Program-made: the position numbers and the translations under genes | In this document: positions 43,401 to 48,746 of the stretch, piece by piece | How the letters are laid out: each line of letters starts with the position of its first letter | Position numbering within the stretch: the first letter of the stretch is position 1 | Assembly: GCF_963676685.1 (NCBI RefSeq) | Contig: NC_092347.1 | Coordinates: 92,194,001 to 92,258,000, forward strand | Length of the DNA stretch: 64,000 nucleotides | Origin: Mytilus edulis | Lineage: Eukaryota | Direction: 5' to 3' | The notes under the pieces: model-generated | What the model was told of the DNA's origin: nothing | The model's database searches: none | The model's input: only the letters and a program-made list of their open reading frames with translations

Positions 43401-46400
43401 GATTGAACTTAAAATCTTTCAGTGTTATGTAATTAGTTTTTACATGAAATAGGGAATAAGAAAGTAAAGCATGAAGCAAACATATGTTTGATTATATTTG
43501 ACAGTGATATGGCCTGTAGCGTAGCAGGAATAACATCAGATGCAAATGTATTGACCAATGAACTACGACTTATAGCACAGAGGTAAGAATATTCAACTGG
43601 AAACATGTTTACATTTATTTAGTGTATCCAGTAAATAAGGTATACATGGTATAGGTTGGGTGGTAATGGGAGATTTTAGATTTTCTGTTTAAATAAATTC
43701 ACAAGGAAGATTTAAGACTTGACATGAAAATAGTTGATCTATATATAAGATTTATTTGGAAGACTGTATTTTGTCCTCTGAATGTCTTTGGGTAATTTTT
43801 TTCCTTGGGTTGTTGTCTCTTTTATATATACCCCTTTGTCTCCTTTTATTTACATACATTGTATGATTGTACAGACTTGAAATATCTATATTTAAATGAC
43901 AAACAAGTGAAATGACCATGGTATTCACTGATCTGTTATTGGAAGTATACCATGTAATTATATTTATCTTACCTCCTATACATTTCTAGGAATATGATTG
44001 ATTAAAAGCGTCTGCATGGAGACCGTGTATATTAAATTTTAGGTTAGTAGGGAGGTGGGGCTTAATTCAATACACGGTTAGTAATGGATTTACGACTTTG
44101 GCACTGTTTGATTTTTTTAAAGTATTGAAAGTTCTGTTTAATATTGTTATATCAAGGTTGTTGATAATAAATAGTTTTTTTTTTAGTGCAGACCAATTGA
44201 AGAAGGTTCTTAAAATTGAACACTTGAAAACTTTAAGGTAGAAATAAGAAGATGTGTTATGATAGAAAATGAGACACTCTAGTCTAAATTCAACAAATAA
44301 AGAGTCAGTAAGATAAATTTGTTACATATTATGCTAGTGACCTAATATGATATATACGGGGTCAGTAAATTCCATATGGGGTTCGAGCTTTGCTCTCTTC
44401 CCATATGAAATTTACTGACCCCGTATATATCATATTAGGTCACTAGCATAATATGTAACTAATAGTACTTTGACTACGAAATTTACAATCAAGGTGATGA
44501 ACTGATTTAACAACAGGCACTTTATACTAAAATATGTTGTTTTTGTCATTACAGATATTTATTACAGTACCAAGAACCAATACCATGTGAACAGCTTGTT
44601 AGTACATTATGTGATATCAAACAGGCTTATACACAGTTTGGAGGTAAATAACTTGTATTGTATTACACAGTTTCAAGCTCACTAGGTTTGTTTTACAAAT
44701 TCATATATCACAAATTACAGAGATCCTTACACTTACATTGAGGAGTCCTAAACTTAAGTTGAGTAAGGACATATTAAAGTTTTTAAGTATATGGTGTACT
44801 AGTATACAGTAGACTCTGCAAAATTTTGAGATATGTATTCAGGACGTCACTTGTCATATTAATTACAGAGATTTTGATTCACAAATAAATAATGAATTTA
44901 AAATGCACTATGATTCTAAGGGAAGATTTAATATTTATCAACACCATACTGAAGACCATGAGAGAGGTTTAAGGATAACAGGTAAAATCATATATTGTTT
45001 CAAGTTACCGGTAAATGTAACTGGATTGTTTTTGTATATCATGTAAACGACCATATAGTATATCCTTACTGTATGATATATTACTATAGGTATTTGGTGT
45101 ATCGTTACTGTATGTGTTTTATTCCAGGTAAAAGACCATTTGGTGTATCGTTACTGTATGTGTTTTATTCCAGGTAAAAGAATATTTGGTGTATTGTTCC
45201 TGTATGGGTATGATTTATACATGTAAATGACTGTTTAGTGTATCCTTACTGTAAATGCATGTGTTTTATTACAGGTAAAAGACCATTTGTGTATTGTTAG
45301 GCAAAAAAAAAATATATGTCTGTTTCCTGTTTCCCGACCGACCCTGACTCAAAGCCCCCGACCCTAGATCTTTTTATTCAATTCCGGAAAAAAATCGTTT
45401 CAGGTCTGGAAAAATTCGTTTCCGATCTGATCCAGCTCCGTATTTTACTATAACCAAACAATCAAAATGGCTGCTCCCAGCACAAATGTGATACAATTAA
45501 GGTTTAAAAAATGTGGGCACTGGGAGGATTAATCAATTAAAGCTTCTTTAAAGAGATTAAATGATTTTAGGGTACAGGACCCTAACCAAACATGACATTT
45601 AACCATCTGCAAATCTGACAGGGAGTGCAAAAAAAAAAACCAAAAAAAATGCCGACCTACCGACCCTGATTTTTTTGCCTTGGCAGCAGGAAACAGACAT
45701 ATATTTTTTCTTGGCCTTACTGTATGTGTTTTATTACAGGTAAAAGACCATTTGGTGTATCGTTACTGTATGTGTTTTATTACAGGTAAAAGACCATTTG
45801 GTGTATCGTTACTGTATGTGTTTTATTACAGGTAAAAGACCCTTTGGTGTATCCTTACTATATGTGTTTTATTTTAGGTAAATGACCCTTTGGTGTATCA
45901 TTACTGTATGTGTTTTATTACAGGTAAAAGACCATTTGGTGTATCCTTACTATATGTGTTTTATTACAGGTAAACGACCATTTGGTGTCGTTACTATATG
46001 TGTTTTGTTACAGGTAAACAACCCTTTGGTGTATCATTACTGTGTGTTTTATTACAGGTAAACGACCATTTGGTGTATCGTTACTGTATGTGTTTTATTT
46101 CAGGTAAACAACCCTTTGGTGTATCATTACTATATGTGTTTTGTTACTGGTAAACGACCATTTGGTGTCCTTACTATATGTGTTTTGTAACAGGTAAACG
46201 ACCATTGGTGTATCCTTACTGTATGTGTTTTATTACAGGTAAACGACCATTTGGTGTCGTTACTATATGTGTTTTGTTACTGGTAAACGACCATTGGTGT
46301 ATCCTTACTGTATGTTTTTTATTACAGGTAAACGACTCTTTGGCGTATCATTACTGTATGTGTTTTATTACAGGTAAACGACCATTTGGTGTATCGTTAC

Positions 46401-48746
46401 TGTATGTGTTTTATTTCAGGTAAACAACCCTTTGGTGTATGGTTACTGTATGTGTTTTATTACAGGTAAACAACCATTTGGAGTATCTTTACTATATGTG
46501 TTTTATTACAGGTAAGCGACTCTTTTGTGTATCGTTACTACAGGTAAACGACTCTTTGGTGTATCGTTACTGTATGTGTTATATTTCAGGTAAACGACTC
46601 TTTGGTGTATCGTTAATGAGTTTTAAATCATGTAATGCATGACTATGCCTTTTTATAAAAACATTTTCCTTCAGTATAACTGTTATAGCTTTTATTTGTA
46701 TATACAGTGTCTCGTAAGTCTTTATAGGCTGGGTATTGATCCTTTTTTTATGATGTTAACGTTTTTATGTATTTTAATGTAGATCAATATGTGACACTTT
46801 AATAAACTATTATTTATCTTTATCTTATCTTATCTTATCGTTACTGTATGTGTTTTATTTCAGGTAAACGACCCTTTGGTGTATCATTACTGTATGTAGG
46901 ATGGGACAAACATTATGGATTCCAGTTATATCAGAGTGATCCCAGTGGTAATTATGGTGGATGGAAAGCCACATGTATAGGAAATAACAGTGCTGTAAGT
47001 CATCAGAAATCATGTTGTAATTAAAAAAAAATAATAGATATTGGATTCATTATAAGTTAGTTTATTGGGATTTGGTAATCAGACTCCAAAAGCCCATTTA
47101 TATAAAATTTGTCCCCATGTTTTGAAAATTTTGGTCAATTTCTGAATTGATTGGTTGAAGTTGGTCAAATCAAGTTGCAAGAACCATGCAATTAACAATA
47201 TGGGGTGCATTGCATTAAATATTTATACAAATATTTAGATAAATGTACAAGCATTTGAAATGATACTTTTGGCAGAAAGGAATATCTGTTTTTTTGAAAA
47301 AATGTATGTTTAATGGATGGAAAATCTAAAATGAAAAATCAGAATATTTTGTCAGTAGTGTGTATGATTTATTTTTAGATATTAGAAATAAAAGTTGATG
47401 AGCAAAAGTCGTAAATGCATTTTCTAGGCAAAAGCAAACAGGTTTAAATATTATTAAACAAGAGTTGAAAGCCTGAAGCAATTGTCATTTATATATGTTT
47501 TTTTATAGTCATAAATGGATATATTTAGAACTAGGAAAGTAAAGTGTTTGTGTATTTGTTTAATTTCAGAATGCTGTATCAATGTTGAAGCAAGAATACA
47601 AAGAAGGAGAAGTTAAACTAAAAGATGCCCTCAATTTAGCTATAAAAATTCTGAGTAAAACTCTAGATATGACTAAACTGACAGCTGAGAAAGGTAACAT
47701 ACATTCATCAACCTAAATAATCTCATGTATAAACTACTGCCAATTTATTTGTTTTCATCAGTACCATTTTTTGTATTGCAGAAAACTTGCTTTTTTGTAT
47801 GTATTTAATTTGTTGGTAGTAACATAGTCTGTTTATGTTCCTACAAAAAAATTGTAATTCATTGAACATTTAAACATGTTGTCCCCCCTTACCCATTAAG
47901 TTTCTTGGAAACCTGTTTGGGTACAATGGTATCCACAGTATTTGAAGAATGTAGGACAGAAAGTCACAGTTCATTTTTTCTGATTATTTTCTTTGAATAA
48001 AAAATGCTTATTTCTACAAAAATATTTTTGTATTTTTCTTGAACTATTGTACATTAACCAACTTTGTAAATAAAATTTGTCAAACATAATTAAATAATTG
48101 TTAGAAAAACAAAATGTCAAAGTGGCTTGGCACTTATAAATGGCTTTATAGTGCCAAGAAATCTTTCTTTTGCACGATTAAAATTCAATAAATCTTTATT
48201 TTTCACGTATAATGACACATTTCCTAAATTTTAATATGAATATATGTATAAAAAAGTAAGTATTTCAAGATATTTCTCTAACATATTCAAACAGTTGTCA
48301 ACAGATTATTTGTGACTTTTTGTCCTACCAAATTTGTGACTATGTCCTGTGACTTTCTGTCCGTTTACCTATTTGAAGTAGGTTAGATTAGACAGAGTTT
48401 GTTTTCATGGGTACATTTAAAATATCCCCCTATTACATGCAGAAGAGATTAAAAAAAAATAACAGAAGCAAAACATGACCTTGAATAAACCATCAAATGC
48501 CTACCCACAAATGTGTATAACATTCCATTATACAATCATTGATTTATTATTTTGATATACCATATTATCTTTTCTTTAACCAAGATGTTATCTTTTCTCA
48601 TAACAGTTGAAATTGCCACATTGACCAGAGTGAACAACAAAACACAGATAACAATCTTACCTGCTGCACAGGTAGAAGATTTGATTAAAATCCATGAAGC
48701 TGAGGAAGCAAAGGTTGAGGCAGAGAAAAAGAAAGAGAAGTCATAG
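40496..48746 (+). CDS. PSMA4: Proteasome subunit alpha type-4 (alpha3); join(40496-40498 candidate ATG, 42622-42664, 42908-43070, 43505-43582, 44555-44643, 46864-46994, 47570-47693, 48607-48746)
   Basis: Spliced product (M)[38 protein letters not shown]...[35 protein letters not shown]...[48 protein letters not shown]...KKEKS*, about 256 aa with all phases consistent. The ATG-bearing exon (cag|CTCTGTATTTCAAAGATG|gtaggt, 40481-40498) is a lower-confidence guess. Confidence 0.93.
44321..44459. repeat. Near-perfect intronic palindrome (60-bp arms, 19-nt loop), probably a foldback MITE
   Basis: 44321-44380 is the reverse complement of 44400-44459 with one mismatch. Confidence 0.9.
45300..45716. 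mobile_element. PIF/Harbinger-type MITE inserted in the PSMA4 junction array
   Basis: TIR GGC(A)nTATATGTCTGTTTCCTG / CAGGAAACAGACATATATTTTTTCTTGGCC with a 3-bp TSD TTA. Confidence 0.8.
46616..46835 (+). mobile_element. Short retroposed 3' tail (LINE/SINE-like) with a (TTATC)n end
   Basis: It ends in AATAAA plus (TATCT)n and is flanked by the 8-bp direct repeat TATCGTTA (46608-46615 / 46836-46843), splitting the last array unit. Confidence 0.65.
47948..48369. mobile_element. Mutator-like MITE
   Basis: Inverted repeat GGACAGAAAGTCACAG / CTGTGACTTTCTGTCC with a 9-bp TSD TATTTGAAG (47939-47947 / 48370-48378). Confidence 0.7.

Follow-up and report, generated by a model that had tools for sequence, protein, structure and literature searches.

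An intron of the mussel PSMA4 gene carries some 25 tandem copies of its own splice acceptor, most likely a tolerated junction-derived minisatellite

Background

Tandem repeats that reiterate an exon-intron boundary, the so-called 'mirages', have been described in amphioxus in the Adh3, globin, TnC and PGBD5 genes, where they leave splicing undisturbed (PMC3087553, PMC3902484). The unit in one of these globin genes, BflGb6, joins the 3' end of the intron to the beginning of the exon that follows it, and AG/GT, where '/' marks a splice boundary or a copy of one, is kept in many of the units while splicing remains normal (PMC3087553, PMC3902484). We report an array of closely similar make-up from the mussel Mytilus edulis, found in a window of 64,000 nucleotides (assembly GCF_963676685.1, contig NC_092347.1, positions 92,194,001 to 92,258,000 of the forward strand; positions given below are those of the window). 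It lies in the intron between exons D and E of PSMA4, the plus-strand gene of the window, and it consists of about 25 copies of the acceptor of exon E, of which all but the last are here called decoys. We put the probability that it is a junction-derived minisatellite of the known 'mirage' type, and most likely tolerated junk, at roughly 0.6, and a new mechanism is not indicated on present evidence.

The likeness to the amphioxus arrays is close in several respects. As in BflGb6, the PSMA4 unit combines the 3' end of the intron with the start of the next exon and AG/GT is kept, and the terminal copy, by which a mirage is recognised, is the functional junction itself and continues into the exon. 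Units of the amphioxus arrays are 81-100% identical and show block-wise homogenisation, which is comparable to the pairwise identity of 71-100% (mean 86%) between units in the main block of the PSMA4 array. The host, however, is a mollusc and not a cephalochordate, the unit is shorter (46 bp, where those of the amphioxus globins have 150-160 bp), there are about 25 copies against 3-6, and every intact PSMA4 decoy is at the same time a ratchet-like site that reads AG/GTAAA. The locus thereby extends a phenomenon known mainly from amphioxus and a few human genes to a bivalve, where such arrays appear to be frequent.

In the human genes, the minisatellites of F7 (a 37-bp variable number tandem repeat, VNTR, in intervening sequence 7, IVS7), IFI6 (6-16), CBS (IVS13), LMNB2 and PDGF reiterate a donor site, and either the exon-adjacent site is used alone or one or two of its neighbours are used as well (PMC1557585). 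The PSMA4 array resembles them in having a terminal unit that straddles the exon-intron boundary, pseudo-splice sites within the intron and an exon-adjacent site that is the one used, but the human arrays are made of 5' sites downstream of the real one whereas that of PSMA4 is made of 3' sites upstream of it. Because the site used in PSMA4 is the last to be transcribed, the 5'-to-3' scanning explanation proposed for F7 does not carry over as it stands.

Two further systems invite comparison. Recursive splice sites are known from Ubx, kuz and Bx of Drosophila and from the recursive-splicing exons (RS-exons) of vertebrates (PMC8605326), and the PSMA4 units share with them an adjoining acceptor and donor (YAG/GTAAR), a nearby downstream donor and a short, out-of-frame cryptic exon. 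Known ratchet points are nevertheless single, conserved and situated in very long introns, and their intermediates have been demonstrated, whereas the PSMA4 sites are tandem copies of an exon edge in an intron of 2.2 kb, and no intermediate was seen in the RNA library, which represents mature mRNA and could not have shown any. Introns may also be gained or extended when AGGT proto-splice sites are duplicated in tandem (PMC2891723), and in PSMA4, too, tandemly duplicated exonic AG/GT sequence becomes intron; the difference is that the position of the PSMA4 intron is kept, an existing intron having grown from about 350 nt to 2.2 kb.

Results and discussion

The PSMA4 gene

The region 42850-48800 was examined with two DNA runs and with RNA from two sources, a raw stranded run, of which about 6% was used, and an assembled run; genome-wide searches covered the 1.37-Gb genome. 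RNA junction reads set the limits of the exons (Table 1), the five junctions of the gene being carried by 18, 17, 38, 33 and 48 reads, and the same junctions recur in an assembled transcript of 855 nt (X16) that comes from a separate study. The identity of the gene follows from searches made exon by exon, with the exons unjoined, in which the best matches are alpha type-4 chains in the PDB (E=5.5e-26 for exon B and E=8.4e-27 for exon E) and the other proteasome alpha subunit types score more weakly for these two exons, at E=1e-17 to 1e-14 or worse. Both exons also match the Pfam family Proteasome, exon E (PF00227) with E=3e-12, and exon E occurs once in the whole genome. At position 46958, a third codon position of exon E, 16 of 48 RNA reads show T>A. 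The X16 transcript and some of the X9 DNA contigs share this variant, which is probably allelic or else separates related taxa.

Anatomy of the array

Intron D/E spans 44644-46863 (2,220 nt), and a 46-bp minisatellite takes up more than half of it. Each unit combines 12 nt from the very end of the intron (GTTTTATTWCAG) with 34 nt from the start of exon E (GTAAAC...CTGTATGT), the latter coding for 12 residues. About 25 tandem acceptor copies, composed of the 3' end of the intron and the first 34 nt of the exon, had been claimed in an earlier reading of the sequence (hereafter the original prediction), and this description is confirmed by Tandem Repeats Finder, by anchoring on GTAA and by alignment with the genuine acceptor. 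At a period of 46, Tandem Repeats Finder reports 4.3 copies with 77% matches at 45092-45299 and 18.1 copies with 87% matches at 45717-46539, the array extending beyond the latter to 46615. When anchored on GTAA, the main block resolves into 20 units between 45740 and 46590, among them the TG/GTAA pair at 46150 and 46283. Over the whole array AG/GT is kept in 22 or 23 units, four or five of which belong to the older block, and the unit at 45089 reads AG/GTAT where the others read AG/GTAA(A or G). A GTATGT hexamer, also foreseen in the original prediction, lies at +28 in each unit. The array also matches itself when shifted by about 274 or 499 bp, the mark of several units having been duplicated as one block, and this points to unequal exchange.

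The unit that closes the array is the genuine acceptor, detached from the rest by the second of two insertions, and 46836-46897 is 96% identical to the unit at 46562-46606. Were the array and the inserts removed, the intron would measure roughly 350 nt. Both inserts, which the earlier reading had left unmentioned, are of transposon type. Words of the first, a miniature inverted-repeat transposable element (MITE), stand at about 115-200 times the single-copy depth in the DNA runs, and the RNA reads that fall on it come from both strands and differ at many positions, so that they stem from other copies of a high-copy family. The second, a repeated element of 220 bp whose words stand at about 33-58 times the single-copy depth, brings a pyrimidine-rich tract with CTTAT branch-like motifs to within 27-60 nt upstream of the real AG.

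An assembly artefact, affecting either the existence of the array or its length, has to be considered, given that the short-read contigs are too short to span it and that none among those listed covers 45835-46615 end to end. We hold this to be very improbable. Contigs of an independent DNA run (X1) match 44449-45126 and 45143-45288 with 0-3 differences and so agree with the first array block, array words are found at 2.6-3.2 times the single-copy depth in two DNA runs that bear two organism labels, and units as diverged as these (86% identity), interrupted by two clean insertions with target-site duplications, would be hard to produce by misassembly.

Table 1. Coordinates of the PSMA4 features in the window and of acceptor arrays elsewhere in the genome (contigs C1, C4 and C8)
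Feature	Position	Strand	Description
PSMA4 exons	42907-43070, 43505-43582, 44555-44643 (D), 46864-46994 (E), 47570-47693, 48607 onward	+	RNA junction reads
PSMA4 exon D	44555-44643	+	Ends GGAG; codes for 29 residues; junctions 43582 to 44555 (17 reads) and 44643 to 46864 (38 reads); Pfam Proteasome
Unique 5' part of intron D/E	44644-44981	+	Starts with donor GTAAAT; single-copy depth in DNA runs
Older degenerate array block	44982-45299	+	About 7 units; AG/GT at 44982, 45089, 45128, 45174 and 45275; AT/GTAA at 45043 and 45223
MITE within a unit	45300-45716	.	417 bp; GGC...GCC ends, 39-nt terminal inverted repeats, TTA target-site duplication
Main array block	45717-46615	+	20 units of 44-46 bp (one of 32 bp); 18 AG/GTAA, 2 TG/GTAA
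Repeated element with (CTTAT)n tail	46616-46835	+	220 bp; flanking direct repeat of up to 8 nt (TATCGTTA)
Last partial unit (genuine branch region, polypyrimidine tract and acceptor)	46836-46863	+	..GTTTTATTTCAG; junction reads
PSMA4 exon E	46864-46994	+	131 nt; G/GT AAA CGA.. (15 residues given)...NNSA, then donor GTAAGT
UNG acceptor array	C4:84829808-84830115		43-bp unit x7; ..TTCTAACTAG/GTGTCCTG, TAG/GTGTCC
GSTCD/TRM13-like methyltransferase array	C8:44935428-44935880		44-bp unit x7; ..ATATTACAG/GTAAATATTGTG, CAG/GTAAAT
PCM1 intron array	51887-54215 of the reverse complement of C8:76090001-76170000		73-bp unit x about 30; ..TTTTTTTTCAG/GCTATGGGTAC.., CAG/GCTATG
PI3-kinase regulatory-subunit array	1-8470 of the reverse complement of C1:29900001-29990000		95-bp unit, at least 89 copies; ..TTTTATTTTTACAG/AGCCAGTACCACC.., CAG/AGCCAG

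Splicing across the array

The RNA reads join exon D to exon E directly, from 44643 to 46864. Among the RNA junctions listed there is no joint to a decoy AG and none that skips exon E, and the conclusion regarding the decoys is drawn mainly from the depth of sense-strand RNA over the array, which is zero in all bins. A sole RNA signal within the array (0.09, at 46432-46630) lies on the opposite strand and adjoins the repeated element. Isoforms that retain the array thus make up less than about 1% of steady-state RNA, while decoy junction use or inclusion of the microexon type is bounded at less than about 8% (0 of 38 reads), and within these two bounds the array leaves regular splicing undisturbed. 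Since depth over the unique part of the intron is 0-0.65 against about 50 over the exons, the library represents mature mRNA only, and intermediates of recursive splicing could not have shown up in it.

The locus can be regarded as a natural experiment on the choice of a 3' splice site, in which about 20 complete branch-tract-AG modules precede the real site and none of them appears in mature mRNA. One decoy, at 46104, differs from the real site at just 2 of 62 positions around the AG and is unused in RNA. Pyrimidine content between -20 and -3 is alike (0.72 at the real site against 0.61-0.72 at the decoys), but between -60 and -21 it reaches 0.70 at the real site against 0.50-0.60, the source of the difference being the (CTTAT)n tail of the insert. 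Beyond +34 everything differs, with the real site running into the 131-nt exon that ends at the GTAAGT donor. It may therefore be exon definition, aided by the better branch and tract region, that picks the last copy, and the decoys would be skipped because the last AG alone is followed by the full 131-nt exon with its GTAAGT donor and is preceded by a longer pyrimidine and branch tract. Within exon D, 44560-44568 holds TTTATTACAG (codons TAT TTA TTA CAG), a 10-mer identical to the tail of the decoy acceptors, which looks like a coincidence.

Origin of the array

We envisage that a 46-bp segment across the 3' splice site of exon E, comprising 12 nt of intron and 34 nt of exon, was tandemly duplicated, and that the array then grew to about 25 copies by slippage and unequal exchange in which blocks of several units would also have taken part. 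The two transposon-type insertions would have struck the array later. The copy in use is the most downstream one, which alone continues into the rest of exon E, and the form AG/GTAAAC derives from the Gly-Lys codons (G/GT AAA) that open the exon. Such a form would in principle make an occasional decoy splice correctable. The array itself is probably without a function of its own and simply tolerated.

Some points weigh against so plain an account. The CAG/GTAAA core is the least variable stretch of eight columns in the unit (3 of 160 cells variant, where the overall rate is 7.7%; first in rank among 46 windows), and this low variability could reflect selection on the decoys, though it makes weak evidence because the units are copies of one another. 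How complete branch-tract-AG modules come to be passed over by the spliceosome is something that we infer. The 0 of 38 reads set a loose bound on the use of decoy junctions, and data that are essentially from mature mRNA leave room for transient decoy use.

A further candidate process, exchange between the array and the functional exon, was considered and rejected. It was suggested by a bias of the variants among PSMA4 units towards sites that are synonymous in the PSMA4 frame (5 of 7 frequent variants, p=0.02; 8 of 17 distinct variants, p=0.07), but the bias is not replicated in the arrays of the PI3-kinase (PI3K) regulatory subunit (5 of 14, p=0.38) and of PCM1 (0 of 3), and we treat it as weak or due to chance.

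Recursive splicing and dose tuning

The original prediction read the array as a set of ratchet points for recursive splicing, and the sequence logic of that reading stands. Exon D meets its intron at 44643/44644 as GGAG/gtaaat, and splicing to a decoy would rebuild GGAG/GTAAAC, which matches the original GTAAAT except at +6; some units offer GTAAAA, GTAAAT (TTAG/GTAAAT at 45878) or GTAAGC (at 46512) in place of GTAAAC. As was also claimed, the unit is not a multiple of 3 and the decoys run into stops (for example ...LLYVFYYR followed by a stop), so that the last AG alone gives PSMA4. In a working ratchet the decoys would be used co-transcriptionally, each use rebuilding GGAG/GTAAAC, which would then be re-spliced to a later AG, stepwise and without leaving a trace in the mRNA. 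We consider this unlikely, if a good deal less remote than the error of assembly weighed above. It has on its side the juxtaposed 3' and 5' splice sites of 22 or 23 units, a rebuilt donor that equals the original from -4 to +5, the low variability of the CAG/GTAAA core and, as demanded by the cryptic RS-exon model (PMC8605326), donors a short way downstream of every unit, namely its own GTATGT at +28 and the GTAAAC of the following unit at +46; moreover, mature mRNA keeps no mark of recursive splicing, so that it could have escaped the RNA run.

The functional part of the prediction fared less well. The proposed check for junctions from 44643 to the decoys, made here in steady-state RNA and hence on mature mRNA only, returned the direct junction to 46864 alone among the junctions listed, with no array read in the sense orientation. 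The intron is only 2.2 kb long, while most of the ratchet points known so far belong to very long introns (PMC8605326), and regenerated 5' sites are reportedly suppressed by the exon junction complex (PMC8184009). A rebuilt donor identical to that of the decoys exists at the real D/E junction and stays unspliced, no skipping of exon E being found among the junctions listed; read from the sequence, this donor, GAG/GTAAAC, agrees with the consensus at 6 of 9 positions, one fewer than the original donor (7 of 9). The GT that follows the AG is, in addition, accounted for by the conserved Gly-Lys codons.

The same genome provides a further argument, in that arrays of 30 and 89 decoy acceptors, in PCM1 and the PI3K regulatory subunit respectively, have no GT after the AG. 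Since these two largest acceptor arrays are unable to rebuild a donor, the tolerance of decoys in this genome need not depend on a ratchet, and re-splicing is not required to account for the survival of the PSMA4 array. Slightly more doubtful again than the ratchet as such is the wider proposition that the decoys are real ratchet points, that exon D is often joined to an early decoy first and then spliced again from the rebuilt GGAG/GTAAAC, that PSMA4, an essential gene, tolerates or uses a chain of self-erasing acceptors, and that the mussel arrays whose exonic part starts with GT form a class corrected by recursive splicing. If this were true, GT-start junction minisatellites would stand in contrast to the non-GT arrays of PCM1 and the PI3K regulatory subunit. 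Arrays whose AG is not followed by GT could serve, within one genome, as matched controls for whether re-splicing, exon definition or nonsense-mediated decay (NMD) keeps such genes working.

NMD enters into a second functional proposal, according to which a decoy-spliced share of the transcripts gains a premature stop and is lost, such that the length of the array, as a VNTR, sets the output of PSMA4. A stop is indeed reached from every decoy, and minisatellites of this sort are length-polymorphic elsewhere (PMC3087553, PMC1557585). We find the proposal distinctly improbable all the same: no RNA containing a decoy was seen, within the steady-state bounds of about 1% for retention and about 8% for inclusion of the microexon type, and the occurrence of similar arrays in unrelated genes of the same genome fits a mutational by-product better than regulation specific to one gene. 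No reads came from a decoy-using isoform with a premature termination codon in steady-state RNA at this depth and without inhibition of NMD. Our preferred interpretation of the PSMA4 array thus continues to be a tolerated, junction-derived minisatellite.

Acceptor arrays elsewhere in the genome

Acceptor arrays were examined in four genes besides PSMA4, namely UNG, a GSTCD/TRM13-like methyltransferase gene, PCM1 and the PI3K regulatory subunit, the last two of which are without AG/GT (Table 1). With PSMA4 included, GT thus follows the AG in three of five arrays, two of these three having been found in a biased way. The last copy of the UNG array enters an exon that codes for 30 residues recognisable as uracil-DNA glycosylase; two further minisatellites (50 bp x5 and 35 bp x7) lie within 1 kb of it. 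The 44-bp array on C8 precedes the final coding exon (51 codons and a stop) of a methyltransferase-like gene with weak, collinear matches to TRM13, whose upstream exons hold a VDFCSGG S-adenosylmethionine-binding motif and an LHACG..CPCCYG motif, and which by eye appears GSTCD-like. The PCM1 array precedes a Q-rich exon (GYGYQQNPDIQQQF..), and that of the PI3K regulatory subunit precedes an exon coding for PVPPPPVVPLPHRLVDCYFVRPVTCSFC; the copy number given for the latter is a lower bound, since the region analysed ends within the array.

The 68% DNA similarity between the PSMA4 and C8 44-bp arrays raised the idea of a shared satellite family, which was rejected, the C8 array being a second, independent acceptor array. 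A junction array in MIF was not found at the six MIF exon-2 loci. We also searched the genome for CAGGTAAA in three successive units spaced 33-63 bp apart, a pattern that gave 862 matches, about 25-30 loci of which could be counted from the listing for contig C1. Its reversed form gave 288 matches, CAGCTAAA and its reverse gave 187 and 176 (3 loci on C1), and CTGGTAAA and its reverse gave 446 and 739 (9 loci on C1), while as a single 8-mer CAGGTAAA occurs 84k times against 79k for its reverse. A genome-wide excess of minisatellites resembling splice junctions is suggestive only, as the controls scatter too widely.

Other tandem repeats of the window

The genome abounds in minisatellites, and arrays with a period of at least 10 occupy 8% of the window. 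At 25853-29086 an internal duplication of 75-77 bp returns five times, every 771 bp or so, which suggests a tandem repeat of about 771 bp in five copies, and 22029-22875 holds an array of 19 copies of a 43-bp unit.

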